Positions 9,547 to 49,376 of a stretch of 64,000 nt of DNA are shown here, piece after piece. Position numbers and translations under genes: made by a program. The first letter of the stretch is position 1; each line of letters begins with the position of its first letter. The stretch is taken from the sequence record PP496443.1; one strand, written 5' to 3'. The notes beneath the pieces were generated by a model. The model ran no database searches and was not told the DNA's origin. It saw only the letters and a program-made list of their open reading frames with translations.

Positions 9547-9565
9547 TACGCAGCGGCAGTAAGTT

Positions 9566-9592: not shown

Positions 9593-9610
9593 ATTCATCT
9601 GGAGAAAGCT

Positions 9611-9805
9611 ATGAGCAGGTATGAACTGACTACTGCACAGTATCGCCGGGTAGTTGCCCACCTGATGTACTGGCAGCGGGGACTTAATGAGGCCATGGAT
9701 GATTGTGGTCTACCGCGCAGTGAACGGGAAGATGTAATCGGAGCACTCGCCAGCGCCGGGTATACCTACAACGAAGACTCAGACACGCTTGTTTATTCGT
9801 GTTAG
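9611..9805 (+). CDS. Small hypothetical protein (64 aa, MSRYELTT...)
   Basis: GGAG RBS at 9601, ATG at 9611. Confidence 0.5.
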   Translation: MSRYELTTAQYRRVVAHLMYWQRGLNEAMDDCGLPRSEREDVIGALASAGYTYNEDSDTLVYSC

Positions 9806-30832: not shown

Positions 30833-31047
30833 GACTTATCTCCAGTCAGGGGTGTGACTCCCAGGTAATTGCCGATGCGCGGAATGAACAATGGGCAGGC
30901 AGTTACACAGACCCAAGCAACGGACATGGGGAACACTACCCCTTGCAACATCGACCAGCCACATGCAAACAGGATGATCAGACTAAGTACTGCGTAGTAC
31001 GCGGACCAGATGATCAACCACCAAGCCTTACGGGACACGTTCTTCAT
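30829..31047 (-). CDS. Small two-TM membrane protein (72 aa)
   Basis: Start re-called to MKNVSRKAWW (ATGA overlap with the helicase stop, AGGAG RBS); two hydrophobic stretches. Confidence 0.6.
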   Translation of the reverse strand: MKNVSRKAWWLIIWSAYYAVLSLIILFACGWSMLQGVVFPMSVAWVCVTACPLFIPRIGNYLGVTPLTGDKS

Positions 31048-32651
31048 TTGTTCCACTCCTTGCGAGCCTTTAGCTGGGCTTCGGTAGGGGCCACCCGGAA
31101 TCGTGTGTTCTGGGGCGACAAGTTCTTGAGCAGTGTGGTGGTCACACATTCGTGCGGCGTGATATGCAGCAGCAGGTCACTGGCTCGGGTATACGACACG
31201 TATTGAACGTGGGGCAGCTGGCCGTCTTCACAGTCGAACCAGTCGTCGATCACCGCGACTCGTTCACTCTCCATCCCCTTCGCACCCCATGAGGTGTTAA
31301 GTTCCACACCTTTGCCGTGGTCATTGGCAATGATCTTGGTGATGAACGTCTTCACTTCGGCAGCGCTACCAAGGTCCCAGTTGGTGACGATGTACAACGC
31401 AGCGTCTGCGGCATCCTTGATCAGTGGCTCCTTGGACTCCTTACGCAAATCATCCAAGGCCTTAACGAAGTCAAGAGTGGACTTGCGGCCGCAGCGCATG
31501 GCGACACCAATCACCTGTTCCAGCACCTTGGCTTTCTTGAAGGTAACCTCCAGTCCACGATCCATGTATTCCAGCGCGATGCGGATCAGATGCTTGTTAC
31601 GGGCGCTGACCACGCGTTGCACGTCGAACTTAATCATGCTCTTGATGCGGTACGGATCCTTCTTGGTGTGCGCCGTCAGCATCTTGACTTGCCCACCCTC
31701 GGCGAAGGCTTCAAGCGGCACATCGGGGAATCGACCCTTGACGAACTCGACGATCTTCGATTTGGACCGGTACGTGGTGGTAGACGGCAATCTCTTAGCG
31801 TTGAACTCCTTGAACATGTCAGCCATGCCCGCGCTCAACCCACCTCGGAACGCATAGATGGCCTGCCATGGATCACCGACGAAGACGAACAACATGCCCG
31901 GCTTCAACCGGCGGAACAGGCGAAGCGTGTCGTGCTGCACAAGGTTGAAGTCTTGGAACTCATCGACGAACAACACGTCCGGCAGGATCTTCGCCAGCGT
32001 GGCGTACTGCGTGCGGATAAAGCTGTTGGCCAGAACCATGCGGCTCATGTCGTTGAAGTCTACCGACGACGTGGTCTCATCACTGGCTTCCAGCGCCTCA
32101 CATATTTCAGGAAGCAGTGGCACCACCTTCTCATGGGGAATCAAGAAGCGGTACTTGCCGGTGATCAGTTCCTTGATCTGCTTGGGGTCGCTGTAGGGAA
32201 TGCCCAATTCACGGATACGCTCTCCGTGCCAGCGGATGTCCTTGTTCACACGAGGCCCGTCTTGGGGGAACAGTGCGTCCACCACCTGGAACCACTTGTC
32301 GAACATGATCGGTACGGCCTTGGCACCCGTCAACGTCTTGAACAACTCCAGCCCGTAGCTGTGCATGGTGGAACTGGAGACCGCCCGATCCTTAATACGC
32401 TGATCGAACACCTTGGCGTTGTCCGTGTTGAACACGATGGCGCGCATGGTCAGCTTCGGGCACTCTTTACGAATGCGGCGGATAGTCTCGATGATCAGGG
32501 TGGTCTTACCCGATCCGGCACCGGCGTCGATGCCCACTGCGTCTTGTGGCTTGCCGGTGTACAAGTCTTTAGGCATCGACTTGGCTTTCTTCAAGATCTC
32601 GTTGAAGATGTCATTCTGTTGCTTGGACCAAACTCTTTCAGTAGTGGACAT
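31044..32651 (-). CDS. Superfamily 1 UvrD/Rep-like DNA helicase
   Basis: DAGAGSGKTT (Walker A), FVDEFQD (Walker B), VGDPWQAIYAFRG, TTYRS, TSWGAKGMES and YVSYTRA. Confidence 0.92.
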   Translation of the reverse strand: MSTTERVWSKQQNDIFNEILKKAKSMPKDLYTGKPQDAVGIDAGAGSGKTTLIIETIRRIRKECPKLTMRAIVFNTDNAKVFDQRIKDRAVSSSTMHSYGLELFKTLTGAKAVPIMFDKWFQVVDALFPQDGPRVNKDIRWHGERIRELGIPYSDPKQIKELITGKYRFLIPHEKVVPLLPEICEALEASDETTSSVDFNDMSRMVLANSFIRTQYATLAKILPDVLFVDEFQDFNLVQHDTLRLFRRLKPGMLFVFVGDPWQAIYAFRGGLSAGMADMFKEFNAKRLPSTTTYRSKSKIVEFVKGRFPDVPLEAFAEGGQVKMLTAHTKKDPYRIKSMIKFDVQRVVSARNKHLIRIALEYMDRGLEVTFKKAKVLEQVIGVAMRCGRKSTLDFVKALDDLRKESKEPLIKDAADAALYIVTNWDLGSAAEVKTFITKIIANDHGKGVELNTSWGAKGMESERVAVIDDWFDCEDGQLPHVQYVSYTRASDLLLHITPHECVTTTLLKNLSPQNTRFRVAPTEAQLKARKEWNK

Positions 32652-32716: not shown

Positions 32717-32778
32717 AGCGTATAGCAATCGAATACGTGGAATTAGCCCTTAACGGCGTCCCCACTAGCGGAGAACAC

Positions 32779-34257
32779 ATGAAATCTGTAGCCGTTGACT
32801 ACCAAAAGATAGCCAAGGAATGCCAGTGTACCGAGCTGCCTTCTAAGGTAAGAGTTACGCGTGCACGGGTCTATCCAAACTTGAGGACGTGTCTACTCTT
32901 CCTCAAGTACGATGCCAAAGGTGAACTGGTACAAGCCGAGATCACTGCGCCGTACGACACGTCCACTGAGCCAAAGGTGAGGGTGCTCAAGCACCCGGAT
33001 AAGAAGTCCGACTTCCTTTCATTATATAGAGCGCTGATCCGCCACCAGATCATACCCGAGTCTATTCCGAAGAAAGGTAACGGGATTGCACCAACGCTGG
33101 AGGTCATCGGCACACTGGTGAGCCTGCTGCCGGAACGGGATGTCGAAACCTTCCGTACGCTGACCCCGGCCATCCAGACGGGCAGCGTCATGTACGTCCC
33201 TCTGGTTACGTCCCGGCCAATGCCCATGGTGCAACACTGGATACCCGTTGACCAGCATTCAGAGCTGGGCATGATCGAGCTGGTCGATACGGATAGCAAG
33301 CCTTTCCTTAATCAGTGGGTCAACAGGTTGAGCAACACCGCCACCGGTTATGTGATCTACACCCCGGAAGGCTCACACGGTCAGGAACTCGCCTGCTTCC
33401 GGGTGCCCAATGTACAAGGGGAGGAACTGTGTGTGGTCAAGAAGGTTGACTTCACCCTGACTGTTGCTCGCACACTCAAGCCGGTACTGACTGTATCCAC
33501 CAAGAGTACTCGGGCAGTGTCCCGCATTCCCCTACCCCACTATCTGATGCTGCGCAATCACCACATCAAGGTGGGCACGGTTATTTCCCTGCGTCGTAAC
33601 GACCGAGGTGGGTTGGTGTACCATGAGACGGTGGCCGAGGAAGGCATGACGCCCCTGCCGCTGTGTCCACACTGCCACAGTGGTTCTGTGCTGCGAGGTA
33701 GTAGCAATGACGTGTACTGCAATAACGATTCATGCCGAGGCCTAGCCATTGTGCGACTTCGTTATGTCTTGAACAACAAGCTGGACGTCAAGTACCTGAG
33801 CGACAATAAGGTAACAGCGCTGATCAATGACAAGCAGGACCTGTTCAGCTTGCTTAAGACACCGACGCACCAGTTACGGCACAGACCTGGCTTTGGTGCA
33901 CGTACCGTGGACGCACTGGAGGAGAAGCTTAACACTATTGCCGGTCTTCCACTGCACACACTGGCCGAGATGTCCTGCGCTTTCTACAACGTGGGCGTGC
34001 CCCCACTGGATGAGATGGTGTTCAAGAAGATCTTTTCCGTTATGTCGATTGACTACCTGAAAGCGCTGCCGTCTACCGGCAAGATGTACAGTCAGCTGCT
34101 CGACATCGAAGGTATCCGCAACAACCGCGCAGTGGCTTTCCTTGCCGGCTGGCCTGCATTTCAACAGTGGATGATAGACCTGAACGCTGCCCTACAGTCT
34201 CGTAGCGCAATCTCCTCCACGGTAAATAACCCGAAACAAATTCGAGGTGTGAAATGA
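32779..34257 (+). CDS. NAD-dependent DNA ligase (LigA)-like protein, apparently catalytically inactive
   Basis: Collinear with LigA (LEVIG, GYVIY, OB fold LKPVLTV/IKVGTVISLRR, Zn finger CPHC...YC...C, HhH PGFGARTV), but KxDG is replaced by PNLRT. No domain Ia or BRCT. Start re-called to the ATG at 32779 (GGAG RBS). Confidence 0.7.
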   Translation: MKSVAVDYQKIAKECQCTELPSKVRVTRARVYPNLRTCLLFLKYDAKGELVQAEITAPYDTSTEPKVRVLKHPDKKSDFLSLYRALIRHQIIPESIPKKGNGIAPTLEVIGTLVSLLPERDVETFRTLTPAIQTGSVMYVPLVTSRPMPMVQHWIPVDQHSELGMIELVDTDSKPFLNQWVNRLSNTATGYVIYTPEGSHGQELACFRVPNVQGEELCVVKKVDFTLTVARTLKPVLTVSTKSTRAVSRIPLPHYLMLRNHHIKVGTVISLRRNDRGGLVYHETVAEEGMTPLPLCPHCHSGSVLRGSSNDVYCNNDSCRGLAIVRLRYVLNNKLDVKYLSDNKVTALINDKQDLFSLLKTPTHQLRHRPGFGARTVDALEEKLNTIAGLPLHTLAEMSCAFYNVGVPPLDEMVFKKIFSVMSIDYLKALPSTGKMYSQLLDIEGIRNNRAVAFLAGWPAFQQWMIDLNAALQSRSAISSTVNNPKQIRGVK

Positions 34258-35018
34258 ACAATCAAAACAGAACTCGTATCGCTGTGCTTGTCGGCGGCGG
34301 TCTGGACTCACATGCGTACATGGTATTGAAAGCCGACCAGCCTCAGACAGACTTCATTCATGTGGACTACGGCCAGCGGGTTGCAGTAGCCGAGAGAAAC
34401 GCCGTGTTGCAAATGGCTGAGAAGCTGGGCATTGCCCGCAGCCGGGTGTACACGCTGATCTGCAACAAGAAGAATCACATGCGCAAGGTCAATGACGGTG
34501 TGGGTGTGTTGTTTGGCACCGGCCCGGTCGAGATGGACAATGCGTTTGTTAAGGGGCGTAACCTGTTCCTGATTCAGAAGGCCATCGAGCTGGGCTACGG
34601 TCACGTGCACTTGACGCTGACCCAAGAGCGTGGCCGGATGTTCCCCGATGCCGATCTGGCATTCGTCCAGCTGGTTGACAACCTGATGCACCGCAGTTAT
34701 GACGTGAGGGTATCCGCCCCCTACATCATGGAAGACAAGCATCGGGTGATGTTCAAGGCGTATCGGCATTGCCCCGAGTTCCTCGATATGTCTTTCACGT
34801 GCTGGGTAGGTCCTTATGTGGAATGTGGCACGTGCCCGCACTGCGTCAAGAAGGAAAAGATTCGAGCCGAGATGATCGTTGAGAAGATTGAATACGATCT
34901 CAGCAAGGATGAACGTGAGGCGCAGTGGGAGCAAGTCAAGGCAGGCTACGGCGACGCGTTGAAGCCCGCTGAGACCATCAACATGAACATTCAGGTTGTT
35001 GACGGGGAAATGAAATGA
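34254..35018 (+). CDS. queC: QueC-like PP-loop ATPase (copy 1)
   Basis: VLVGGGLDS, DYGQR...E, FVKGRNLFLI, FPDAD...F, AP and SFTCW...CGTCPHC zinc motif. Confidence 0.8.
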   Translation: MNNQNRTRIAVLVGGGLDSHAYMVLKADQPQTDFIHVDYGQRVAVAERNAVLQMAEKLGIARSRVYTLICNKKNHMRKVNDGVGVLFGTGPVEMDNAFVKGRNLFLIQKAIELGYGHVHLTLTQERGRMFPDADLAFVQLVDNLMHRSYDVRVSAPYIMEDKHRVMFKAYRHCPEFLDMSFTCWVGPYVECGTCPHCVKKEKIRAEMIVEKIEYDLSKDEREAQWEQVKAGYGDALKPAETINMNIQVVDGEMK

Positions 35019-35776
35019 ACAAGTTCTTATGTTGGTTCAATCGTCTGCTGGGTAAGGAGCAAAAGGCGGTAACGATGACAATGACCGACGCCAGTGGCAA
35101 GTTGGTCACCATTCATATACCTAAAGGTGCCGGGGTTGAGTACACCTTGTCGAAGTCGGGTGCCCACTTGAACGTCTCGGTCAAGGACGACATCTTCGTA
35201 TTGAGCACGAACGGTGCTGGAGGCGGTGGGGGTGGCCGCGGTAGATCCAAACCTGGTGGCCCCGGCCATCCGCCCGTGCATCCGCGCCAAACCGTCCCAG
35301 TGGGTCCAGGCGCCCCGAACATGGGTTGCGCTGGGGACGCACCGAGTGGAGCAGGTGTAACGTCGCCAGTGGGCGCTCAAGCTTCGTTCCCTATCGGTGC
35401 CCGAGCCACTGTTTCTAGTGGTGGCCGCGTTGGTGGTCTGGCGGGTGACGGACGGGAACACAGAGAACTAGGAGGTGCACCCGGTCCCGGCGGAGATAGC
35501 TTCGTTCCCTCTCCAATCCGTAGTAGTGACCGAGCCTATCGCATCCGCGGTCTGTACTACGTCATTACGACTCGAAAGCTTACAGGTGAGGAGTACCCGA
35601 CCCACGAACTTCTGCACTGGGGCCTTCGAGACATAGAACTCATGGGCAAGTTCTCAACGGTCCGTGAAGCTATCGACGAACTCAAGAGTAAGCTGGGTAT
35701 CGTGTTAGACGATATTACGGACTATCAGGTTGACTCCATTCCCAAACGGATGTGCAAACCACCGCACAAATCTTGA
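35015..35776 (+). CDS. Hypothetical protein with Gly/Pro-rich disordered centre
   Basis: 253 aa, ATGA-coupled to QueC-like copy 1; GAGGGGGGRGRSKPGGPG...GGAPGPGG. Confidence 0.6.
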   Translation: MNKFLCWFNRLLGKEQKAVTMTMTDASGKLVTIHIPKGAGVEYTLSKSGAHLNVSVKDDIFVLSTNGAGGGGGGRGRSKPGGPGHPPVHPRQTVPVGPGAPNMGCAGDAPSGAGVTSPVGAQASFPIGARATVSSGGRVGGLAGDGREHRELGGAPGPGGDSFVPSPIRSSDRAYRIRGLYYVITTRKLTGEEYPTHELLHWGLRDIELMGKFSTVREAIDELKSKLGIVLDDITDYQVDSIPKRMCKPPHKS

Positions 35777-35779
35777 GCG

Positions 35780-35787
35780 GGTAAATG
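35780..35787 (+). promoter_or_regulatory. GGTAAATG box
   Basis: Intergenic, 28 nt upstream of QueC-like copy 2. Confidence 0.5.
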
Positions 35788-35814
35788 GCTCGCAACTAAT
35801 CCGGAGACACTAGC

Positions 35815-36633
35815 ATGACCACTACACCCCCTAAGATTATCGTCGCATTCAGCGCTGGCACAGATTCAACCACAGCGGCCTATTACTATCGCAAGCTCGG
35901 GTATCAGGTTACGCTGGCTGTCTTCGATGATGGCCCCTGCAACGATCCAAAGGATCCTCTGTACGATCCTAACAAGCCGGAAGATCTTACCAATTTCTCC
36001 GACGAGTTCTACGATTACGTACGAATCCATCAAGAACACACTGAGGGTCACCTGCAGTTCGACTTTGTGGAGATCCGTTACCCACAGCTCCCGTTGTTGG
36101 AAGCCAACAAGACGGCTAAACCTGGTCGGGACAACGCGGCGGCAGCCGAAGCTGACGGCTTGGGGTTCTGGGTAGGCTTCAAAGGTCTGATGGCGATGAT
36201 GCTGATGAGCCACGGCGCGGCCAACGGTTACGAGGCTGTAGTCTTCGGCCACATGCCGTACAACAACCATTACGAAGATGAGCTGCCGCAGAACTTCGAG
36301 CTGCTGCGCCAGTACATGGTTACGGCCTATGGCAGCCGAGTGGAAATTCCTCAGATCTACCACCCGTTCTATCGACCGAATTTCGATACCAAGGAAAAGG
36401 TTATTGAGCTGGCGCAGGCAATCGGCGTGCCCTTGCGAGATACCTATTCGTGCCGCCGAGGTGAAGTAGAAACCCGAGGTATCCTATTGCCACTTCTGCG
36501 TGGTGGTAAATCCAACTACGTGAGCCCCACCTACCGCTGGAAGCATTGTGGTACGTGTGAGAACTGTGTCGAACGCAAGCGAGCCTTCGCGGCGCTGGGC
36601 ATGAAAGATCCTGCCCCTTATATGGAACATTGA
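35815..36633 (+). CDS. queC: QueC-like PP-loop ATPase (copy 2)
   Basis: IVAFSAGTDST, HPF...TKEKVI, TYSC and HCGTCENCVERKRAF. Confidence 0.8.
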   Translation: MTTTPPKIIVAFSAGTDSTTAAYYYRKLGYQVTLAVFDDGPCNDPKDPLYDPNKPEDLTNFSDEFYDYVRIHQEHTEGHLQFDFVEIRYPQLPLLEANKTAKPGRDNAAAAEADGLGFWVGFKGLMAMMLMSHGAANGYEAVVFGHMPYNNHYEDELPQNFELLRQYMVTAYGSRVEIPQIYHPFYRPNFDTKEKVIELAQAIGVPLRDTYSCRRGEVETRGILLPLLRGGKSNYVSPTYRWKHCGTCENCVERKRAFAALGMKDPAPYMEH

Positions 36634-36634
36634 T

Positions 36635-37624
36635 ATGGCCCTTTCAACCTGGCCGCTGACCGAAGGTGAACTCGGTCAGGGCCTCGTCAACGAACTGAAT
36701 CGTACCAGCAAGGCGCTGGTGAACCGGAGTATGTGGTCTTTGCCATTGCTCCGGCGTTTGTTTTATCGGCGCACCGAGATTGGTGTCCCGGAGCTACTCC
36801 ACGTCTGTACCAGCATTCATCGGGGCAAGACTTACTTCTGCCTGTTGGTGAACTTCCGAGACGTGGTGATGGGCAATCCCGACCAGTATGGCTGGGATCT
36901 GGCGGGCCGCTGGTTGTTCTACGACGTTGACCTGCTGGACACCCCGCCGTTCAAAGCGGTGAAGAAGTCCATTGAGTCCCGTGCCACCAAGACCGAAGTG
37001 TCGTACGGTCAGGCTTTCCTCCCTTACGAGAAGAGCGATGAGGAATACGTCAAGTCCCTCAAGGGCAACTACAAGCCCCACATCTTCGGCGAGAAGTCCA
37101 AGCAGTATCGCGTCTTATCGTACTTCGGGCTGGCAGCGGTAGCCCCCTTCGCTCAAGCTCTGATGTGCTTCGGCATTCAGCGCGCCGAAAGGTTTATGGC
37201 CGAAGGGCAGAACGATGTCCTCCCCGAGTTGTACGACCTGCCACTGCAACTGGCGGGGCTCGGCAATGTCTCGAACACCCGCATCGGCTGCGTGACCATT
37301 GAAGTAGAAGGTACGATGGTAGGTGCTATCAGCATGTATGCTCAAGGTGCACTGGGCGACGCGGACATGCTGTATCTGCACGAGATCCTCATCGACCCGG
37401 ACCCCAAGTGGAAGAGCTTGTCGCTGGCTACTCTGCTGCACATTCATGCCGTCCTGTACTATCGCCGATCCCTCCAGAAAGACATAGTGTTCAACCTGGG
37501 CTATAACTTCGCCGATGGGTATCAAGGTTACAAGGATGTCTTCCGTCCCAACGCCAACGCCTTCAACGTGTACACCGAGATGGACACCGAGCCCGGCGTA
37601 CCACTGTCCTGTTTCAAGGGGTAA
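36635..37624 (+). CDS. Fem/BioF2-like GNAT-fold transferase (paralog 1)
   Basis: GNAT strands (VTIEVEGTMVGAISM, LYLHEIL, SLATLLHIHAV) ending FNLGY...YKDVF, as in FemABX/Acetyltransf_6 proteins. Confidence 0.55.
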   Translation: MALSTWPLTEGELGQGLVNELNRTSKALVNRSMWSLPLLRRLFYRRTEIGVPELLHVCTSIHRGKTYFCLLVNFRDVVMGNPDQYGWDLAGRWLFYDVDLLDTPPFKAVKKSIESRATKTEVSYGQAFLPYEKSDEEYVKSLKGNYKPHIFGEKSKQYRVLSYFGLAAVAPFAQALMCFGIQRAERFMAEGQNDVLPELYDLPLQLAGLGNVSNTRIGCVTIEVEGTMVGAISMYAQGALGDADMLYLHEILIDPDPKWKSLSLATLLHIHAVLYYRRSLQKDIVFNLGYNFADGYQGYKDVFRPNANAFNVYTEMDTEPGVPLSCFKG

Positions 37625-37627
37625 GAC

Positions 37628-38629
37628 ATGTACACTCCGTATTCCCAAAACAGCCTTATGCAGTCGATCCCTCTGGATGACCAAGGTACATTCGCCCATC
37701 CACCGTACACGATGGAAGGAGAGTTCACCGACGTGTGGACGAATCCCAGCCTGTACGGGTTTGTTAGCTTGTTGAACGGTCAGAGCAATAGCCGGGCATA
37801 TCGAGACTGGATGACCACCCACAATCTTCCAGCCCTGTTCCTCGGTCCGCACCATGAAGACAACTTCTGGTTTGAATTCAGCACTGGTCTCGATTCCAAC
37901 TGCACGCTGGATTACAACGAGATCAACGTCCAAGGCAACCTGCAGGACTTCCTTGGGAGATTGACGTCATCTCGCCGTCGCTCCGTGCTCAAGGCAAAGG
38001 AAACGGATACAATGATCCACAAGGCAGGCTCGGTAGCCAACTTCAACCTGTATCATCCGGTAGAGGGTAGGCTGTATAGTCTGACCGTGATTCACGAACG
38101 CCGGGTGATGAAAGATATTTCCGAGTTTATCGAATCGAAACTCTGGAGTATGAAGCATACGCCTACTGACCTCACGTACGGTGCATTCACCACTCTGATG
38201 GACTACATCCGGTTGAAGCAGCGAGATGACACGCCGCTGGGCCACCGGTTGCGCAACGTACAGCTCTTGATTATCCGAGATGAACGCTCCGGGTTTATCG
38301 TGTCGGTACACCTGGTGGCGATCAACACGTTGAAAGATGAGTCCATGAACCCCATCAAGACGTACATGCACTCCTTCGCACGCATCACTGTTCTCCCTGC
38401 ACGTATCGCCTTACTTGCGTTGATCAAGGCGGTTCAAGAGTTAAACGTCACCAGTCAGTATGCGTCCCGTGCACTGGCGAAGATCGACTATCTTGATGTG
38501 AGCAACGTGGTGCTGTCCGAGCGAGAGCAGTACAAGTCGGACTTCTTCACCGGCAAATGCCAAGTGCGTGCGTGGGCATCCCCGGCGCTGCTGGAACGGC
38601 AGTTACCTTTCGTTACGCCGATCCCGTAA
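37628..38629 (+). CDS. Fem/BioF2-like GNAT-fold transferase (paralog 2)
   Basis: FLGRLTSSRRRSVLKA helix and C-terminal IDYLDVS...QYKSDF, both Fem-family hallmarks. Confidence 0.55.
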   Translation: MYTPYSQNSLMQSIPLDDQGTFAHPPYTMEGEFTDVWTNPSLYGFVSLLNGQSNSRAYRDWMTTHNLPALFLGPHHEDNFWFEFSTGLDSNCTLDYNEINVQGNLQDFLGRLTSSRRRSVLKAKETDTMIHKAGSVANFNLYHPVEGRLYSLTVIHERRVMKDISEFIESKLWSMKHTPTDLTYGAFTTLMDYIRLKQRDDTPLGHRLRNVQLLIIRDERSGFIVSVHLVAINTLKDESMNPIKTYMHSFARITVLPARIALLALIKAVQELNVTSQYASRALAKIDYLDVSNVVLSEREQYKSDFFTGKCQVRAWASPALLERQLPFVTPIP

Positions 38630-38632
38630 CTC

Positions 38633-38640
38633 TGTAAATG
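38633..38640 (+). promoter_or_regulatory. TGTAAATG box
   Basis: Intergenic; the 12-mer GTAAATGATGGG is identical to that at 7648. Confidence 0.55.
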
Positions 38641-38683
38641 ATGGGAACAGCCCCACCATCACTTCATCTCTAGGGTAGTTCCC

Positions 38684-39736
38684 ATGCAAGACTTCGATAA
38701 GATAATGATCGATAGTAGTTTGACATCCAATCTGGTGTACGCAGGGTTGGGTAACTTGATCACGCCCCGCGCACTTGACCTGCTGATCGAACATCAGGCT
38801 GCACTGGAAAACGTATACGCCAATCTGGAAACGGCCTATCAGATTACCCCACCCTTCCCCTGTGAAGCTGCATTCAATTCCCCTGACAAAGATCCTGTGC
38901 TGGTCGCCGACTATCTGAATGCTACTCCCGCCATCCGTTGCGGAGAGCTGGCTGGATTCGAGGCAAAGCCCGGCAGTTACTACCATGCGCCCGCCGCTGG
39001 TATCTCCCCGGAACATCGCATCGACGTACGTGGTATGTCTTTGCGTGAGTTCGACCACTATCTGGTTGAGCGTAAGGAGGTATCCCGTATCACTACCAAT
39101 CTGGTGGCCGACAAGTTCCGCTGTGAGACGCATGTGTACAAAGTGGATGAAGATCATATCCTGATCCATGACGCCGAACGAGTTGGGATCAGCCAGACGG
39201 ACTTCCGCCGCATGTGGGCGCAGACCCGCCGCCGGGAAATCGCTGAAAACTATCTGCAGTACATGCCCATCGAAGACTCCGCCAAGGATGATCAGGTGGT
39301 GCGCCTGATCAACGAAGACGTAGCACGGGTGTTCGCCCAGAACGTCGACTACGACCGCATGATTCCGCCCGAGCTGATCTTCGATGGTCAGGGCAAGCCG
39401 GTGCTGACCGTGCTGAAAGATTGCAACGCCAAGGTGTTGGGCATTGGTGTGTACGTCATCTACAAGTCAGCTGACCCAGAGAATGACAGCGAACTGCACT
39501 GGCGTGGCGCTTTCTACGATCACGAAGATCCTCGCGTAGCATCCATGGGCATTGAACACGCTCTGGTTGCCAGCGCACTGCATACAGCGTACGCCTGCAA
39601 CGCGGTCCTCTATCTGACCAAGGCACCTAAGTCCGTGTGCGACGCATGGAAGACGGAAGTGCACCAAGGTTACGGTCTGGTCCGTAATGCGATGCCGGAA
39701 CTGTCTGACACCCCTTACATTCTGGCTATCCAGTAA
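38684..39736 (+). CDS. Fem/GNAT-like transferase (paralog 3)
   Basis: QTRRREI helix, VLGIGVYV, LHWRGAFYD, MGIEHALVASAL and terminal AWK; more divergent than the others. Confidence 0.45.
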   Translation: MQDFDKIMIDSSLTSNLVYAGLGNLITPRALDLLIEHQAALENVYANLETAYQITPPFPCEAAFNSPDKDPVLVADYLNATPAIRCGELAGFEAKPGSYYHAPAAGISPEHRIDVRGMSLREFDHYLVERKEVSRITTNLVADKFRCETHVYKVDEDHILIHDAERVGISQTDFRRMWAQTRRREIAENYLQYMPIEDSAKDDQVVRLINEDVARVFAQNVDYDRMIPPELIFDGQGKPVLTVLKDCNAKVLGIGVYVIYKSADPENDSELHWRGAFYDHEDPRVASMGIEHALVASALHTAYACNAVLYLTKAPKSVCDAWKTEVHQGYGLVRNAMPELSDTPYILAIQ

Positions 39737-39769
39737 ATAGCCGGTAACTCCATCCATTGAGGTACTTCC

Positions 39770-41854
39770 ATGAAATCCGTGAACCCCATCTTCAAGCACG
39801 TTCCCCAGTTCGACTGGCCTGTCATTCCCCGTGCGCAGTGGGAAGAGATCATCAAGGGAAAAGAGCATGTTATGTTCGACTCCTTCTCGCAGCTCGCTCA
39901 AGTGTTGGCTATCCCGGTGAGCAGTTACCAGTTCTACTTCGAAGATGGGTCCACGTTGTTCGCCGGTCCCGAAGCAACCTTCACCGCCGCGCCGTACCCG
40001 CTGTATCAGGACCTTGAATTCGTCCTGACCCCTGACGAGACGTTGGTACCGGGTCTTGCACTGGATACCAAACCGTGGGGCCTGTACACCGACGAATGGG
40101 TGGACAACTACGAAGGTGCGGACAAGGAAGACATCGGCAACAAGACCGGGTTCGAATTCATTCCGCTGTCGGACGCCTTGAAACTGGTGGTCCTCAACAC
40201 GGAGACCATGCAGCTCCAGTACACTGCCATCGAGAGCTTCACGTACGACGGCGTGACTTACGTATACCTGCTGGCCGATGGCGTGTGCTGGGTACTGGCG
40301 GGCAAGTCCGGTGGTCTGGTTGCCAGCGAGCATGACAAAGGTGCTGCGTTCATCATGGTGTCCCATCCCGAGTTCGCCGGGTGCAGCGTAGACAACATGT
40401 ACCCAAGTGAGTTCGGTGAAGCGGAAGCGACGTTCTACGTTCAAGACGAGGAACACAATTACCTGGACGCGGCTAACCGCATCTTCGAGGAAGCCAAGGA
40501 CGTAGGCGCTGGCACTTTCCTGACCATTGAGACCGGGGATGGACTGCCGACGGCACTGGCCTACAACCTGCGGTACAGTGACGTGGCCCACGTTAACCTG
40601 CCGATGCACAACATCCACCAGTTCACGTCTCTGCACGTACGACTGGGCGAGACGCCTAACTTCTCCGAGGCCCCGGAAGCGTGCCGTATGAAAGAGGTGA
40701 TGGAGTATCTGGCGGACCCTGAGTCCCCGGTAGATCATTACTGGTCGGCCATCATGGTACTGGAGAAGAACTTCCCCGGTTTCGCCGACGCCCTGAAAGA
40801 CTCCAGTGTCCCGACCCGTGACATCGTGCACTCCAAACAGGCGTTCAGCTTGGAGATCGATCGCCAGTTCGGCAAGGAAGTGGCAAGCAAGATCGGCCTG
40901 AACACTGGCGTATTCGCCCAAGTGAAAGACCGTGATGAGTGGCTGACCCGTCAAGACGATTTTCCTACCGACAAGGTGGCCGTTAAGTACAACACCAAAC
41001 ACTTCATCGGCATCTTCGACAAGGACGAGGTATCGAATTCCATCAACATGTGGCTGGCCGGTCAACCCGGAGAGTCGCTGATGATCGAAGAGTACTTCGG
41101 TGAGGGCAATCAGGAATTCAACCTGTGCTATGTGATCAACGAAGAGTTCGTGCAGCCGACGCTGTTCCTGTGCGAAGTCAACAAGATCCTCGGTAATGAC
41201 ACCGGCGGCAAAGGTGGCAACACGCTGGCCTGCCATGATGCTCGTATTAACAAGTACCCTGAGTTCTTCGAGCCGGTCAATAATGCGCTTGCTAACCTGC
41301 ATGAGCACGTGGAAGGTGTGAAGGGCTGGGTTGACCTGAGCTTCATGGTCCGCGACGGCATCCCTTACTTCACAGAGTGGTGCATTCGCATCGGCTGCTC
41401 CAACAACGCCACCATCGTGCGCCAGATGGAGACCCCGCTCGACGTTCTTTTGACTAACGTGGTTAACAAGGTGCATACCGAGCTGTCTTGGAAGCACTCC
41501 ATGTCTGTTAGCGTGGACATCTACAGCATGCCGCTGTCCGCAGGCAATGATGCCAACATGCAGTTCACCGACTCGCTGACCACTCCGGTAGAGATGGTGT
41601 CCCCACTCAATCTGGAATTGGCAGCGGAGAGTTTCTTCGACCCGATTGATTCGGCCTGGAACGCGGTGTACGACGGCTACATTGTCGAGGCGTACAACCG
41701 ATATGGCACCGTATCGGGGTATTCCACCAACTGGAACTTCGCCTGCAATGCGGCGTACAATCACTTGAAAGATCAGTCGGTGTTGTACGGGGCATACCGC
41801 GAAGCGCCTGCCCACCACGACCCACTGACTCTGTTCCCTTTCCTCAAGGCGTAA
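39770..41854 (+). CDS. PurD (GAR synthetase)-like ATP-grasp amide ligase with N-terminal extension
   Basis: AFSLEIDRQFGKE, VAVKY, LMIEEYF.....EF, NDTGGKGGN and VDLSFMVRDGIPYFTEWCIRIG parallel PurD motifs (LE.SK.FAK, VVIEEFL.G.E, GPNTGGMG, P.V.EFN.RFG). Confidence 0.7.
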   Translation: MKSVNPIFKHVPQFDWPVIPRAQWEEIIKGKEHVMFDSFSQLAQVLAIPVSSYQFYFEDGSTLFAGPEATFTAAPYPLYQDLEFVLTPDETLVPGLALDTKPWGLYTDEWVDNYEGADKEDIGNKTGFEFIPLSDALKLVVLNTETMQLQYTAIESFTYDGVTYVYLLADGVCWVLAGKSGGLVASEHDKGAAFIMVSHPEFAGCSVDNMYPSEFGEAEATFYVQDEEHNYLDAANRIFEEAKDVGAGTFLTIETGDGLPTALAYNLRYSDVAHVNLPMHNIHQFTSLHVRLGETPNFSEAPEACRMKEVMEYLADPESPVDHYWSAIMVLEKNFPGFADALKDSSVPTRDIVHSKQAFSLEIDRQFGKEVASKIGLNTGVFAQVKDRDEWLTRQDDFPTDKVAVKYNTKHFIGIFDKDEVSNSINMWLAGQPGESLMIEEYFGEGNQEFNLCYVINEEFVQPTLFLCEVNKILGNDTGGKGGNTLACHDARINKYPEFFEPVNNALANLHEHVEGVKGWVDLSFMVRDGIPYFTEWCIRIGCSNNATIVRQMETPLDVLLTNVVNKVHTELSWKHSMSVSVDIYSMPLSAGNDANMQFTDSLTTPVEMVSPLNLELAAESFFDPIDSAWNAVYDGYIVEAYNRYGTVSGYSTNWNFACNAAYNHLKDQSVLYGAYREAPAHHDPLTLFPFLKA

Positions 41855-41857
41855 TCC

Positions 41858-43021
41858 ATGAGCACTCCATTCCAAGAGTTCACCCTAGAAGGGTGGATTC
41901 GCTACATGAGAGATGAAAGCATCATCTGGCGCGCGTACGCTGATGGTCATCCGGATAAGGTCGAGTTCAGCCCGAAGTGGCGTGACGAGATGTATCGGTT
42001 GATGGTGCAGTTCAAAGATCTGCTGCCGATGTCGTTTTCCAATCCGGTGTACGGCTTCACTGAAGGTTGGCTGGAAGGGCTCGGACTCCAGCCCTTTTAT
42101 GGCGATGATCCGTTCAATCCGATGGTGCAACCTCTTAGCCACCCTCTGGTGCATGTGGGGCTTCCGTTTACTCTGAGCGAGCTGACGGCGGGCGTATGGG
42201 ACTGGCAGTCCCTGAGCGCGCACCTAGGGCGTCCGCTGCTGGTCGATACATTCGAACCGATCCCAGTGCCATCTATTAGCCTGGACGCTTACAAAGCCGT
42301 CCTGACCGTACGGGACCGGGAAGAGATCGTGATGAGTGCGGGAACCCCGGTGAACTACTTCCTCTGGTTGAATAGTCCGATCACCGAACTCAAAGACGAC
42401 TTCGACGTTTATCTGGCCAGCCTGACGAAGAAGCGCCGCTACAAAGTGAAGCAGGCACTGGCGACAGTGGGCACCGAAGAGAACCCGGCTATCAGCGTCA
42501 GTACTGGATCTCGTTTCGGCGAAGGGTTGTTGTCCGATCAGGTGAACAGCATCCTCGCGACTTTCGAAGATCCGGTGGACATCGAGTGCATGCTTCTTCA
42601 GCTGCTGTTCGGGGTGGCAACCTGCAATACCCATCCGCATCTTGTCGATCTGGTTTGTGCAGACCAGCAGTTGGGGATCTTCATCAAGCGTAACGGCCAT
42701 ACGATGAACTTCCTCTACAACCGTGACCCTGACAACCGCGCTGACTCAGGCATCAACCTGCTGACCCAGTACGTGCGCCATCTGCACATGAACCGCCCGG
42801 AAGGTGTGATGTACGTGGACCCGACATGTCGATATCGGCCTGACGAGGACAGTATGAACACCTACAAGCGGGTGATCACCAACGAGAACCGGTATCACCC
42901 AATGCCGTTCGTCTCGGCTGACCCTGCGCATATCGAAGGTGTGATTACCCCGGCGTTCATTGCAGGTCATTGGCAGATGTCGGCGTCCAATGGCCCGGCC
43001 AATCCTGAGATGATGGAGTAA
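41858..43021 (+). CDS. Fem/BioF2-like GNAT-fold transferase (paralog 4)
   Basis: FDVYLASLTKKRRYKVKQAL helix, GINLLTQYV and terminal YKRVI. Confidence 0.55.
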   Translation: MSTPFQEFTLEGWIRYMRDESIIWRAYADGHPDKVEFSPKWRDEMYRLMVQFKDLLPMSFSNPVYGFTEGWLEGLGLQPFYGDDPFNPMVQPLSHPLVHVGLPFTLSELTAGVWDWQSLSAHLGRPLLVDTFEPIPVPSISLDAYKAVLTVRDREEIVMSAGTPVNYFLWLNSPITELKDDFDVYLASLTKKRRYKVKQALATVGTEENPAISVSTGSRFGEGLLSDQVNSILATFEDPVDIECMLLQLLFGVATCNTHPHLVDLVCADQQLGIFIKRNGHTMNFLYNRDPDNRADSGINLLTQYVRHLHMNRPEGVMYVDPTCRYRPDEDSMNTYKRVITNENRYHPMPFVSADPAHIEGVITPAFIAGHWQMSASNGPANPEMME

Positions 43022-43023
43022 CC

Positions 43024-43971
43024 ATGGCAAAGCACAAGGTCAAAAGGTTGGAAATCAACCACATCTACGACTTCTACCCGTTGTATCAGGTGATGTACGG
43101 GCGTGGCATGGAGACCAAAGCGTTCGAGGTCTCCAAGTTCGCCAAGATGGTGCTGGACTTCGAAGCATCAACCAGTACTCGCCGGAAGTGGGACGTGCTG
43201 GAACCTTTCAGCGGTATCAGCGAGCATGAACACTTCTTCGCTGCTACTGGCCTGAACATCGAGCACTACACCGGCATGGACATCGTGGTTCCAGATGGGG
43301 CCAAAAACGTCATTCAAGGTGACATCATCACCGACACCCTTCCGTTTCACGTCAACGCGGTGTTCGCCTTCTACTACAGCTTGCAGAATGTACGGGACGC
43401 CAAGACTGGCATGCACACGCGGGAAAAGCTGGTGGAGTTCTTCGACAACATCCTCGGCCATCTGCAAGTCAATGCGAACAAGAGCCGTATGCCCGCAGTG
43501 TTCGCTTTCCACCTTGACCAGCCTGAAGACCCTAATTACTATCTGACGTCCCGTGCCGACGTTGGAGGTGAACAGTCATGGACCGCACCCGCGTGTGGTC
43601 TGCTGGGGCAGTGGGTCAAGTGCAAGCCTACTGATACTCTGGAAGTGAAGTGCAATCTGGACACCTGGTACAACCGTGTGCAGTGCACCGCGTACGATCA
43701 GGCGGAGGATATCCAGATTCTGGTAAATGGGCGAGTAGTGGCTACCGTTGAGATCGAACAGCCGTTCACCCATCGGGTCTGGACCGAGCACGAGGTTATC
43801 GATATCCTGCGTGGTCTGGACTACAATCTGCACTTCCACATGTACAACGGCACCATCTCCAATTACGACTTCTTGATGACCCGTTTGGAAGACAAGCCCG
43901 TTCCCGGCGATGAAGAGGCTAATACTAATCAGATGACAACTGATATGCTGGTTGTCGTTAATCCGAGGTAA
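43024..43971 (+). CDS. Class I SAM-dependent methyltransferase (paralog 1)
   Basis: VLEPFSG (motif I), YTGMDI (motif II), VIQGDI (motif III) and NAVFAFYYSL. Confidence 0.7.
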   Translation: MAKHKVKRLEINHIYDFYPLYQVMYGRGMETKAFEVSKFAKMVLDFEASTSTRRKWDVLEPFSGISEHEHFFAATGLNIEHYTGMDIVVPDGAKNVIQGDIITDTLPFHVNAVFAFYYSLQNVRDAKTGMHTREKLVEFFDNILGHLQVNANKSRMPAVFAFHLDQPEDPNYYLTSRADVGGEQSWTAPACGLLGQWVKCKPTDTLEVKCNLDTWYNRVQCTAYDQAEDIQILVNGRVVATVEIEQPFTHRVWTEHEVIDILRGLDYNLHFHMYNGTISNYDFLMTRLEDKPVPGDEEANTNQMTTDMLVVVNPR

Positions 43972-43973
43972 GA

Positions 43974-44891
43974 ATGGCTAAGCCCAAGATCCCTACACGA
44001 ACCATCCCCACGTTGTACCAAGACTGGGGGTTGTACAGCGCCATCTGCGAACTGCCGCAGGAGACGATGCTGATGATGTCGCGCTTCGTGGCAGACCGGA
44101 CTATAGAGCATGCTAATAGGCATGACATAGATCGTGTGTCGATCATGGAACCTTTCAGTGGTCCTATCCCGTATTACGAACCTGATATCGACAGTTTCCT
44201 TACTAGAGCTGGCATAGGTTTAGACACGTATGATCATGTGGAATACCTGGATCACGGCAAACTATCGGAAGACAACGGCATCATCATCGGTGACATCACC
44301 ACCATCGATCTGAAGCAGAAGTACGACGTCATCTACGGCAGTTACGGCAGCTTGGCCTGCCTGCTGCTGGATCAGACGCACAACAAAGCTTACGAGAAGT
44401 CGCACGCGGCGCTGGTCAACATCCGCAACCACCTGAAACCCAACGGCATCTTCGTCCTGAACGCCAACGGATCCAGCGAAAGCCTGCTGAATAACCTGTT
44501 GAACTCCGATGAGCCGGATCAGGAGATTCGCGTCCGTCCGGGATCGCAGTTGGGTAAGGCGTTCCGAATCAAACCAGACAGTAACGCGCTGCTTCGCTTC
44601 ACCTATCATGTGGAGTACGACCGGCGCACCACCTGCACCATGTGCCACTACAGCGATATGGTGCTGTCTGTAAATGGAGTTGACATCCAGCGCTGGGAGG
44701 TGGAATCCCCGACGTATCTTGCGCCGCTGGACGAACCCGAACTAATTCGAATGGCAGGTATGGCAGGTTTCAATCTGGACAACACTGAGTTTTACGGATT
44801 GGACACCACCGGTTATCCTGCCTTCTTCAAAATGGATACGGTCTGCGACGGGTCATGGTCACCCGCCGAGTTCGTAGTCTTTCGCACCTAA
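43974..44891 (+). CDS. Class I SAM-dependent methyltransferase (paralog 2)
   Basis: IMEPFSG, IIIGDITTIDLKQKYDVI, GSLACL and HLKPNGIFVLN. Confidence 0.85.
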   Translation: MAKPKIPTRTIPTLYQDWGLYSAICELPQETMLMMSRFVADRTIEHANRHDIDRVSIMEPFSGPIPYYEPDIDSFLTRAGIGLDTYDHVEYLDHGKLSEDNGIIIGDITTIDLKQKYDVIYGSYGSLACLLLDQTHNKAYEKSHAALVNIRNHLKPNGIFVLNANGSSESLLNNLLNSDEPDQEIRVRPGSQLGKAFRIKPDSNALLRFTYHVEYDRRTTCTMCHYSDMVLSVNGVDIQRWEVESPTYLAPLDEPELIRMAGMAGFNLDNTEFYGLDTTGYPAFFKMDTVCDGSWSPAEFVVFRT

Positions 44892-44901
44892 CGAGGTTAC
44901 T

Positions 44902-46137
44902 ATGAGCGTTATCATCCCCACCGTAGCGATGGAGAGTGGTCAGCCAGACATGATCATTCAAGGCTGTTCCACTGGTCGCGTCTCTATGGCCGAGCCTAAC
45001 GAGAGCGCCAAACCTAAGTCTTCCAAGAAGCTGTACGAACGTGAAGACCTGATGGCGTACGACAGCGAGTCGGAGCACTGGCAGAAGCAGTTGGCCCGCC
45101 GCTACGCTCACCACGGTGAGATGGTCGGTGTGTTGAACAACGTCGAGGTGGTGCCGGAAGCCACCTATCAGAACTTCGACATGAAGATCACCCCGTACAC
45201 CGCGCAGTTGATGGACCAGAACGACCCCAACTGCCCGATCCGTTTGCAGTACATGCCGACCAACAAAGAGCTGGAGTCGATTCAGCGCGAAGAGACCATG
45301 CACAACGAGCTGGGCGAGGAAGAGGACACCATCCCCGGTACCTCGGTCGTGCATCGCTACCCGCGTCGCGTCTTGTTCCTGACCACTACCCAATGCGCCA
45401 GCTTCTGCCGTTACTGCACCCGTGCACGCATCGTCTCCCACGGCGGCGAAGCGGCGATCACCAAGAAGCACCTTGACGCCAGCATCGACTACATCGCCGG
45501 GAACAAGGACATCGAAGACGTGCTGCTGTCCGGCGGTGACCCGTTCATCCTCCCAGACAACAAGCTCGACGAGATCCTCGGTCGTATCCGTGCTGAAGCA
45601 CCTCACGTTCGCTTCCTGCGTATTGGTAGCCGACTGCCGGTCCAGATGCCGACTCGTATCACTCCAGAGCTGTGCGAGATTCTGGAACGCCACAACGTCA
45701 ACATGGTCAACATCCATGTGAACCACCCGAAAGAGGTTACCCCTCTGCTGGCCTCCCGGTTGAAGATGCTGCGTAAAGCGGGCGTCATGCTGGGCAATCA
45801 GGCGGTCCTGCTGAAAGGCGTGAACGACTCCATCGAGGTGATGACCGAGCTGTGCTTGCGCATGGTCGAGATGGGTGTGCGTCCGTACTACGTCTACTCC
45901 AACGATCCGGTTGCGCAGGCCGCACACTTCACCGTCTCGCTCCGTGATATGCTGGACATCAACGAAGGCATGCGTGGCTTCCTGTCCGGCCCGGCAATGC
46001 CCACCTTCGTGGTGGATGGCGTCGGTGGCTTGGGCAAGATGCCCGTGCAGAAAGAGTACGTATCAATGCTGGGCAGTGGTAAGATCTGGGCCACCAACTT
46101 CGAAGGAATGACCACCCGCATGCCCCATCTGGAGTAA
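44902..46137 (+). CDS. kamA: KamA-family radical SAM lysine 2,3-aminomutase
   Basis: HRYPRRVL, CASFCRYCTR (CxxxCxxC), VLLSGGDP, RIGSR.PV..P.RIT, HVNHPKE, NQAVLLKGVND, RPYY and PTFVVD..GG.GK.P (PLP lysine). Confidence 0.95.
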   Translation: MSVIIPTVAMESGQPDMIIQGCSTGRVSMAEPNESAKPKSSKKLYEREDLMAYDSESEHWQKQLARRYAHHGEMVGVLNNVEVVPEATYQNFDMKITPYTAQLMDQNDPNCPIRLQYMPTNKELESIQREETMHNELGEEEDTIPGTSVVHRYPRRVLFLTTTQCASFCRYCTRARIVSHGGEAAITKKHLDASIDYIAGNKDIEDVLLSGGDPFILPDNKLDEILGRIRAEAPHVRFLRIGSRLPVQMPTRITPELCEILERHNVNMVNIHVNHPKEVTPLLASRLKMLRKAGVMLGNQAVLLKGVNDSIEVMTELCLRMVEMGVRPYYVYSNDPVAQAAHFTVSLRDMLDINEGMRGFLSGPAMPTFVVDGVGGLGKMPVQKEYVSMLGSGKIWATNFEGMTTRMPHLE

Positions 46138-46800: not shown

Positions 46801-47121
46801 ATGGCTAAAGACAGATTCCTGATCTACTCCAAAAACTGCTTAGGGTGTAAACACCTCGTTGATGGAGCCAAGAAGACCTACACTGCGTGTCACTACAGTG
46901 AAGGCAACGAACGCTGCCCCGCGCAGTACGTCCAGATTATTACGGGTGTGGATATCCATGCCTTGGCTACTGAGTTGGCAGACGCCATCAGGGCTAACAA
47001 TTCCAAGAAGTACGATCGGGTGAATGCCAAGATCGGTAAATTGGACACTGTGATTGCCAGTAGTGTGAAGCTGGCCGCAGACAACCTAATAGCAGGGGCC
47101 GGTGATGGCGAAGGTAAATAG
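46801..47121 (+). CDS. Small Cys-containing (putative Zn-binding) protein
   Basis: CLGC...C...CP motif, GAGG RBS. Confidence 0.65.
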   Translation: MAKDRFLIYSKNCLGCKHLVDGAKKTYTACHYSEGNERCPAQYVQIITGVDIHALATELADAIRANNSKKYDRVNAKIGKLDTVIASSVKLAADNLIAGAGDGEGK

Positions 47122-49075: not shown

Positions 49076-49133
49076 TCCACCCCATTGCATACCCCGATCC
49101 GTTGCGCACCGCCTGGAGCGTTATACGCGGTCG

Positions 49134-49141
49134 GGTAAATG
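49134..49141 (+). promoter_or_regulatory. GGTAAATG box
   Basis: Intergenic, 20 nt upstream of 49161. Confidence 0.5.
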
Positions 49142-49160
49142 CTGGGTAGTGAGGTGATTC

Positions 49161-49376
49161 ATGCGCAACACAATGATGAAGTCGGTCAAGTGCACGACAT
49201 GCCGAGGTGAAGGGTTCACGGTGGATACGTCTCGGTCCAAAGGATCGATGGACGAACAGATAGACCGATGCCACACGTGCAAGGGCCAAAAGGTGGTGAT
49301 CGTTAAGATCTTTGACCCGTCCCCGGAAGACCAAGCCAATCAGTACGCTGCCCTATACGAACAGGATAAGAAGTAA
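49161..49376 (+). CDS. Small DnaJ-type zinc-finger protein
   Basis: CTTCRGEG and CHTCKGQK (CxxCxGxG repeats), GAGG RBS. Confidence 0.7.
   Translation: MRNTMMKSVKCTTCRGEGFTVDTSRSKGSMDEQIDRCHTCKGQKVVIVKIFDPSPEDQANQYAALYEQDKK

Follow-up and report, generated by a model that had tools for sequence, protein, structure and literature searches.

Results

Location and domain layout of Lauda_00184

We analyzed a 64,000-nucleotide stretch of sequence record PP496443.1 (the window, whose position 1 is record position 124001) and, within it, Lauda_00184, a plus-strand gene that is annotated as encoding a hypothetical protein. The gene region is 100% identical to Pseudomonas phage vB_PpuM-Lauda (PP496443), a 201-kb myovirus (jumbo phage) of Pseudomonas putida. 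An earlier reading of the DNA letters (the original prediction) had taken the product for a pseudo-ligase, that is, a derivative of the DNA ligase LigA that keeps the ligase architecture and has lost all of its adenylation residues, and we use the name pseudo-ligase for the gene and its product here. The list of open reading frames (ORFs) instead begins the gene at an upstream GTG (32737–34257). We take ATG 32779 as the start because a GGAG lies 5 nucleotides (nt) upstream and because the same start is used in all nine related phage records; the stop codon occupies 34255–34257. The gene and its parts, all on the plus strand, are as follows, with the AlphaFold2 per-residue confidence (pLDDT) and isoelectric point (pI) given where they bear on the assignment.

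32770–32773, plus strand: Shine–Dalgarno-like GGAG, 5 nt before ATG 32779, read from the sequence
32779–34257, plus strand: pseudo-ligase coding sequence (Lauda_00184), intact ORF of 492 amino acids (aa) plus stop
32779–33399, plus strand: N-terminal domain, residues 1–207, at the position of the LigA nucleotidyltransferase (NTase) domain, with no catalytic residues
32878–32889, plus strand: motif I relic N34-L35-R36-T37, which replaces K-x-D-G and is identical in phages Lauda, Aura, and Peetri
33400–33648, plus strand: LigA-type OB fold, residues 208–290, beginning at the motif V position (hhalign; pLDDT ~90)
33649–33744, plus strand: Cys4 zinc finger, residues 291–322, with C296, C299, C314, and C319 aligned with the LigA cysteines
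33745–34194, plus strand: HhH domain, residues 323–472, with a GFG hairpin at 371–373 and IEGI at 442–445 (pLDDT 80–93)
34195–34254, plus strand: basic C-terminal tail, residues 473–492, pI 12, with low pLDDT and no BRCT domain

The C-terminal half consists of the OB fold, zinc finger, and HhH domain of LigA

The C-terminal half of Lauda_00184 is unmistakably the OB fold, Cys4 zinc finger, and HhH domain of LigA. We aligned a profile of the three-member pseudo-ligase family (this protein and its two Vibrio-phage homologues) with 24 LigAs in hhalign and found that pseudo-ligase residues 208–472 correspond to LigA residues 316–584 of 675, from motif V through HhH, with 99.8% probability and an E value of 8e-30. 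Searched against the PDB, the same family profile retrieved seven LigA structures (best E 5e-14), and phmmer matched Deinococcus LigA 8ak4 over residues 226–351. An exhaustive search of 1.84 billion representative proteins gave 19 matches, which include the protein's own cluster and two Vibrio phage proteins (437–440 aa); the others that were examined are full-length LigAs, and these align to pseudo-ligase residues ~210–470 only. The four zinc cysteines are invariant in one alignment with real LigAs, and in a 32-sequence alignment C299 and C314 are invariant while C296 and C319 are conserved in at least 90%. AlphaFold2 run from the single sequence gave a mean pLDDT of 35 and was unusable; run on the 32-sequence alignment, it gave pLDDT 80–93 over residues 216–480, and all top Foldseek matches of that model are LigA structures (E ~1e-15). 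These results bear out the claim that the OB fold, zinc finger, and HhH repeats persist.

Single-sequence family searches return much less. The window protein alone has no Pfam match (E 0.1) and no PHROG match, and against the NCBIfam LigA equivalog TIGR00575 it scores 27.4 bits with a cut-off of 444, matching over residues 295–395. The Vibrio orthologues do match the OB-fold family PF03120, at E 2e-8 to 7e-8.

Two LigA domains are absent, as had been predicted. The protein begins at the position of the LigA "PMLSL" sequence and so lacks domain Ia, and the 127-nt spacer upstream of the gene contains no ORF that could encode this domain; at the other end it stops 20 residues past the HhH domain, without a BRCT domain. 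It also differs from LigA in charge, with a pI of 9.3 for the whole protein and 10.1 for the OB fold and with every domain basic in all three lineages, whereas the domains of a comparison LigA (P0021) have pIs of ~5–6.

The N-terminal domain lacks the adenylation motifs of LigA

We mapped the NTase motifs with a MAFFT alignment of the pseudo-ligase family and 28 real LigAs (the 32 sequences mentioned above), which reproduced the motif assignments of the original by-eye alignment (NLRT, EVIGT, TGYVIY, and CFR). The replacements in the window protein and in its Vibrio orthologues are listed below.

Motif I, KxDG: N34-L-R-T37; Vibrio orthologues GLLG and NFGG
TRGDG: EITAP; Vibrio orthologues KIAED / KVAFD
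Motif III, EVRGE: E108-V-I-G-T112; IEICG in one Vibrio orthologue (P0008), the other (P0002) being poorly aligned
Motif IV, DGxVxK: T189-G-Y-V-I-Y194; KGTVLV in P0002, P0008 being largely gapped
Motif V, lysine: R208 (MAFFT) or P210 (hhalign); Vibrio orthologues keep the lysine

The motif I K, D, and G are invariant in 24 real LigAs. No alignment places a motif I lysine in the pseudo-ligase, and in all three lineages the N-terminal part is free of K-x-[DE]-G (residues 1–215 of the window protein). The claim that all adenylation residues are lost is thus correct for the Pseudomonas protein and too strong for the family, in which the Vibrio orthologues retain the motif V lysine. NAD-dependent adenylation requires both the motif I lysine and domain Ia, and because neither is present we expect no ligation from Lauda_00184. 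Judged by its sequence, the protein is most likely a LigA derivative that has lost catalysis, and it is predicted to be unable to seal nicks.

What the N-terminal domain is can be stated less firmly. Sequence searches with it in Pfam, PHROG, NCBIfam, and the PDB (by profile) matched nothing, a hidden Markov model (HMM) of LigA Ia plus NTase scores residues 1–207 no better than shuffled sequence, and AlphaFold2 assigns the domain a pLDDT of 30–70 on the 32-sequence alignment. On the other side, the domain lies where an NTase domain would and has a suitable length, its predicted helices and strands follow one another in the same order whether or not the alignment is used, and hhalign of the N-terminal parts gives a weak match that is in register over the stretch from PMLSL to motif I (E 0.026). 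In the Vibrio protein, the match to a PHROG LigA profile extends into the motif IV/V region (E 0.003), and of 100 language-model neighbors 94 come from clusters that mostly carry PF01653, although at a score of 0.73 this is a lead only. Position, secondary-structure order, the weak profile match, the language-model neighbors, and the low-confidence model together indicate that residues 1–207 are probably a degenerate NTase relic; homology to the adenylation domain, as read from sequence, is not statistically demonstrable. Of the proposed retention of the LigA architecture, then, the C-terminal half stands on solid ground and the N-terminal half does not reach significance.

A partner that would supply domain Ia and the lysine, as in a split ligase, was sought and rejected. 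The candidates examined, namely a 147–151-aa ORF that overlaps the start of the Vibrio gene and the 153-aa Lauda_00045, have no Pfam match, no KxDG, and no similarity to each other. Lauda_00045 (record 39646–40107) carries a "DNA ligase" label that derives from a 67-position PHROG profile only and that is doubtful because the protein has neither a Pfam match nor KxDG. It adjoins DHFR, as does the unrelated Vibrio ORF at the start of the pseudo-ligase.

The pseudo-ligase is under strong purifying selection

We compared the gene pairwise among Lauda, Aura, and Peetri, for which synonymous divergence (dS) is 0.26–0.67, and found a ratio of nonsynonymous to synonymous divergence (dN/dS) of 0.05–0.07 over the whole gene. 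The ratio is 0.06 for the N-terminal domain, 0.01 for the OB fold, 0.03–0.04 for the zinc finger, and 0.09–0.13 for the HhH domain, and the last 20 residues alone are relaxed (0.3–0.45). The pseudo-ligase is therefore under strong purifying selection. That no family database recognizes Lauda_00184 might have pointed to a decaying pseudogene or an annotation artefact, and the selection check across phage homologues had been proposed with such decay in mind. In the nine Pseudomonas phages and both Vibrio phages, however, the ORF is intact; the gene is preceded by a ribosome-binding site and is apparently coupled to the next gene in translation (see below), and a dN/dS this low at dS up to 0.67 refutes decay, so that the probability left to this explanation is negligible. 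Homology to an enzyme, loss of the catalytic residues, and purifying selection coincide in Lauda_00184, which makes it a pseudoenzyme.

The constraint on the N-terminal domain could also be taken to mean that the protein is still an enzyme, either because this domain performs some other, non-covalent nucleotidyl transfer or another transfer on DNA or because a different lysine ligates. Two residues, K13 and T171, are unchanged in all three lineages, and the finding that the Pseudomonas phages have no recognizable DpdA-type enzyme (see below) leaves a pathway step without a candidate to which such an activity might be assigned. K13, however, belongs to the first helix, well away from the place that corresponds to motif I. 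Across lineages the N-terminal domain shares almost no polar residue, unlike an active site, and to our knowledge every known member of the ligase/capping-enzyme superfamily needs the motif I lysine. We consider a surviving activity of this kind decidedly improbable. Constraint within the Pseudomonas phages combined with divergence between lineages fits a docking surface for lineage-specific partners better than an active site.

Eleven phages carry both the pseudo-ligase and a complete LigA

A tblastn search of 50,697 phage records located orthologues in nine P. putida jumbo phages and in the Vibrio coralliilyticus phages GR11A and GR7B, where they are annotated "ligA" and are 25–28% identical to Lauda_00184. 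The family comprises three lineages that are ~25% identical to each other. No further members were found in 5.8 billion clustered proteins, 1.84 billion representatives, IMG/VR, or the JGI metagenomes, and the family thus amounts to three sequence clusters among 1.84 billion representative proteins. Because there are no members beyond the nine Pseudomonas and two Vibrio phages, the alignment of the N-terminal domain is shallow.

In 11 of the 11 carriers the pseudo-ligase lacks the motif I lysine and adjoins QueC-type genes, and a complete LigA, orthologous among the carriers, is encoded at another locus. In Lauda this resident ligase is:

PP496443 record positions 121679–123658, just left of the window, minus strand: Lauda_00140, LigA with full NTase motifs

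Lauda_00140 has an Ia-type motif, K128-LDG, RGE, DGVIV, and FAFK, and because the phage encodes this complete LigA, nick sealing is already covered. It contains one cysteine in its 659 aa and so no Cys4 zinc finger, whereas the dead copy keeps the finger; the resident LigA and the pseudo-ligase have lost complementary parts.

The pseudo-ligase is not a recent duplicate of Lauda_00140. The two proteins can hardly be aligned, the zinc finger is missing from the resident, and the two are separate in a tree of the OB-Zn-HhH region, in which the three pseudo-ligase lineages form one long-branched group (98/98) apart from the resident LigA. Long-branch attraction may contribute to the grouping of the three lineages. 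Judged from these alignments and this tree, the pseudo-ligase is an old, separate lineage.

The pseudo-ligase heads a row of twelve genes

The original prediction had placed the gene first in a cluster of enzymes, and it does head a row of twelve same-strand genes (32779–46137) that are joined by 4-nt overlaps or separated by gaps of at most 55 nt. The ATG of the gene that follows, QueC-like 1, overlaps the pseudo-ligase stop codon (ATGA), an arrangement that is the same in Peetri and Aura and that suggests translational coupling of the two genes. The recognizable members of the row, which also holds proteins without an assigned family, and the divergent gene on its left are as follows.

31044–32651, minus strand: SF1 UvrD/Rep-type helicase (PF00580), divergent from the pseudo-ligase
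34254–35018, plus strand: QueC-like PP-loop enzyme 1 (Pfam PF06508, E 7e-19)
35015–46137, plus strand: remainder of the tightly packed gene row, all on the same strand
35015–35776, plus strand: Gly/Pro-rich protein, 253 aa, with a ~100-aa Gly/Pro-rich low-complexity core and no family match
35815–36633, plus strand: QueC-like PP-loop enzyme 2
36635–37624 and 41858–43021, plus strand: FemXAB/Acetyltransf_6-like proteins (feature score 0.94–0.95, TM 0.5–0.65; no Pfam match)
39770–41854, plus strand: PurD-like ATP-grasp protein, 694 aa
43974–44891, plus strand: weak methyltransferase-like protein
44902–46137, plus strand: radical SAM lysine-2,3-aminomutase-like enzyme

Promoter- and terminator-like sites are no commoner inside the row than in shuffled sequence. 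The dN/dS of the pseudo-ligase is below that of 10 of the 11 downstream operon genes (0.08–0.25) and similar to that of QueC-like 2 (0.07–0.08); the helicase next door has a lower value still. The Gly/Pro-rich protein, at ~0.2, has one of the highest values in the row, similar to those of a 329-aa and a 387-aa protein.

The helicase raises the possibility that the pseudo-ligase is a replication or recombination accessory of this SF1 UvrD/Rep-type enzyme, unrelated to modification and a relic of the bacterial pairing of pcrA with ligA, a linkage known in Firmicutes. The helicase gene lies close to the pseudo-ligase, on the opposite strand, in both phage clades, the Lauda protein is 31–33% identical to the products of the Vibrio phage rep genes, and orthologues with more than 30% identity occur in the same 11 phages only. 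The two genes are, however, divergently transcribed, and in the Vibrio phages two genes, one of them DHFR, lie between them, whereas it is with the QueC-type genes that the pseudo-ligase shares its strand and its tight spacing or overlap. We regard a helicase accessory as an unlikely description of the protein.

The next relatives of the helicase (~25% identity) are found in ~58-kb Pseudomonas, Xanthomonas, and Variovorax siphophages. One of these, Quinobequin-P09, belongs to Queuovirinae/Nipunavirus, a subfamily named after queuosine-pathway genes.

A possible role in DNA base modification

Elsewhere in its genome Lauda encodes FolE (GTP cyclohydrolase I; PF01227, E 4e-39) and a QueE-like radical SAM gene; QueD was not identified. 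From their predicted families, the most likely joint product of the operon, FolE, and the QueE-like enzyme is a 7-deazaguanine-type base in phage DNA that is decorated with an amide or an amino acid, and the FemXAB-like pair hints that amino acids may be attached to the modified base. The Vibrio phages have counterparts of the helicase, the pseudo-ligase, and the QueC-type genes, and also of the ATP-grasp protein (38% identity) and of a FemXAB-like protein (29% identity); the 387-aa product of the row is among the shared proteins.

The OB, zinc-finger, and HhH domains of LigA encircle duplex DNA, and because these domains are kept we expect Lauda_00184 to bind DNA. Its domains, its basic pI, and its position in the operon lead us to propose, at about an even chance of being right, that it is a non-catalytic, LigA-derived DNA-binding or scaffold subunit for the modification enzymes. 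Under this proposal the LigA-type clamp would hold duplex DNA while the degenerate N-terminal domain would dock each lineage's own modifying enzymes, which could then act on the DNA; the pseudo-ligase would be made together with the enzymes encoded downstream, and the separate full LigA would seal nicks. DNA binding, the partnership with modifying enzymes, and the modification chemistry are all inferred from sequence and gene context.

The Vibrio phages add a component of interest. In GR11A and GR7B a DUF5591-type gene directly follows the pseudo-ligase, and DUF5591 is otherwise met in proteins of the archaeosine tRNA-guanine-transglycosylase type. The DUF5591-type proteins, given in the coordinates of their own loci, are:

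7158–8120 (locus L002, Vibrio phage): DUF5591-type protein
7835–8842 (locus L003, Vibrio phage): DUF5591-type protein
8863–9738 (locus L011, Xanthomonas phage PhiXhv-12): DUF5591-type protein

The homologues in Xanthomonas jumbo phages are clustered with a GATase-QueC fusion, an L/F-tRNA-protein transferase, a GNAT protein, a deacetylase, and a glycosyltransferase, which is the company that a DpdA-like DNA transglycosylase would be expected to keep. This Xanthomonas cluster resembles another uncharacterized hypermodification operon.

Several observations weigh against a partnership of the pseudo-ligase with modifying enzymes. The DUF5591/Gat-QueC clusters of the Xanthomonas jumbo phages have no LigA-like gene; in PhiXhv-12 none was found in the cluster, and the 545-aa protein upstream is a GNAT. 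No DpdA-type transglycosylase or DUF5591 homologue was found in the Pseudomonas phage by tblastn and a small HMM search, and for this reason DNA is unproven as the substrate of the operon in the Pseudomonas phages. Of 50,697 phage records, 11 contain the 694-aa ATP-grasp protein, the best-conserved enzyme of the row, and these are precisely the 11 that contain the pseudo-ligase, whereas the phages with the next-closest LigAs (Rhizobium phages, Motura, and phiRSL1) carry neither; but the 11 carriers are kin, so that co-occurrence with the operon represents one or two evolutionary events and is weak evidence. The helicase is equally syntenic, and the fold of the N-terminal domain is not established.

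The same domains would also serve a sensor or protector of DNA nicks and lesions, which would bind nicks, gaps, or abasic intermediates in phage DNA, such as those of base exchange or replication, and either shield them from nucleases and nick-sensing host systems or hand them to LigA. The ring formed by the OB, zinc-finger, HhH, and NTase domains of LigA is built to encircle a nick. R126 of the pseudo-ligase aligns with the conserved arginine of the "PRN" sequence in the DNA-contact loop of the LigA NTase domain, the "RT" of the "GRTG" loop in the OB fold is kept in the Pseudomonas protein, and the Vibrio gene adjoins a probable transglycosylase. Against this, nothing is left of the AMP-pocket residues by which LigA positions the 5′ phosphate of the nick, the Vibrio orthologues do not conserve the OB "RT", and every carrier has a real LigA, so that a hand-over is not obviously needed. 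A sensor or protector is a possibility that we entertain, without thinking it probable.

The original prediction had further suggested a dominant-negative shield against host LigA or nick-sensing defences, for which we found no evidence. As an anti-defence decoy the protein would occupy DNA ends or nicks in competition with the LigA or the defence proteins of the host, and the general expectation that it binds the same DNA structures as LigA is all that speaks for this. Nothing in the genomic context points to such a role, the gene is part of a biosynthetic row and not among early host-takeover genes, and these P. putida phages are strongly blocked by host prophage-encoded defences (bioRxiv 10.1101/2024.03.26.586772). 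A decoy is very unlikely.

A more specific form of the scaffold proposal can be put forward tentatively, as a suggestion that stands well short of an even chance. The dead LigA may be the DNA-engaging subunit of a machinery not described so far, which would install a 7-deazaguanine-type base decorated with an amino acid or peptide directly on duplex phage DNA, or mature it there; the protein would then correspond, with a LigA origin, to an accessory factor such as DpdB. In the Pseudomonas phages the pseudo-ligase, whose nucleotide-binding domain is reshaped, could help to present or flip the target base, either for an insertion step of a new type or for on-DNA amidation by the coupled QueC-like enzyme. 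DpdB is the accessory ATPase, with a ParB-like fold, that DpdA needs to insert preQ0 into bacterial DNA. The likeness would be one of function, that of a DNA-engaging helper beside 7-deazaguanine enzymes, whereas the fold of DpdB is unrelated and DpdB is an active ATPase.

Comparison with known systems

Compared with LigA (PDB 2owo, 1dgs, and 8ak4), the pseudo-ligase has the OB fold, Cys4 finger, and HhH domain in the same order and an N-terminal domain of roughly NTase size, but it lacks domain Ia, BRCT, the motif I lysine, and the catalytic residues of motifs III, IV, and V, its N-terminal domain is unrecognizable, it is much more basic, and it falls far below the equivalog cut-off. Lauda_00140 shares with it the genome, the superfamily, and the OB and HhH domains but keeps Ia and all NTase motifs and has no zinc-finger cysteines. 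Escherichia coli LigB is likewise a second, trimmed copy of LigA without BRCT that exists beside the full enzyme; LigB differs in that it retains the catalytic lysine and is a weak ligase; its losses affect part of the zinc finger and spare the active site. The heterodimeric split ligase of the T5-like phage PR1 (PDB 9hu3 and 9i5i), which was matched by sequence and fold, also separates the catalytic from the DNA-binding half, but the PR1 halves reassemble into an active ligase, whereas no partner with Ia and lysine was found here.

Jumbo phages also encode the standalone DNA-binding domain of ATP-dependent ligases, which has been proposed to recruit the host ligase (Iyer et al. 2021, PMC7824862). 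That module resembles the pseudo-ligase in being a non-catalytic, ligase-derived DNA-binding module in jumbo phages; it comes from another ligase family and another domain and is not linked to modification genes.

Full-text literature searches returned neither an account of an inactive LigA nor one of these genes, and the paper on the isolation of the P. putida phages contains no analysis of these genes or of the bases of virion DNA. We know of no earlier report of a LigA that is catalytically dead and yet maintained by selection, and the pseudo-ligase offers a clear-cut and rare case of a ligase that has become a pseudoenzyme. Because the family is very rare, it is of limited importance in general. 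If it is a clamp recruited by base-modifying enzymes, phages would have recycled the scaffold of a repair enzyme, giving biosynthetic enzymes access to duplex DNA, and the gene would flag an unexplored hypermodification operon with QueC-like, FemXAB-like, ATP-grasp, and radical SAM enzymes. A novel DNA base that resists restriction may be specified by this operon, and a ligase-shaped DNA binder that does not seal could serve as a probe for nicks or duplex DNA.

Other features of the window

No tRNA genes were found in the window. Further from the pseudo-ligase, on either side of the gene row, are several other genes of nucleic acid metabolism and a DnaJ-domain protein.

260–826, minus strand: RNA ligase (annotated)
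47102–50884, 50912–51604, and ~51601–52212, plus strand: topoisomerase II subunits (GyrB- and GyrA-like), DnaJ-domain protein, and polynucleotide kinase

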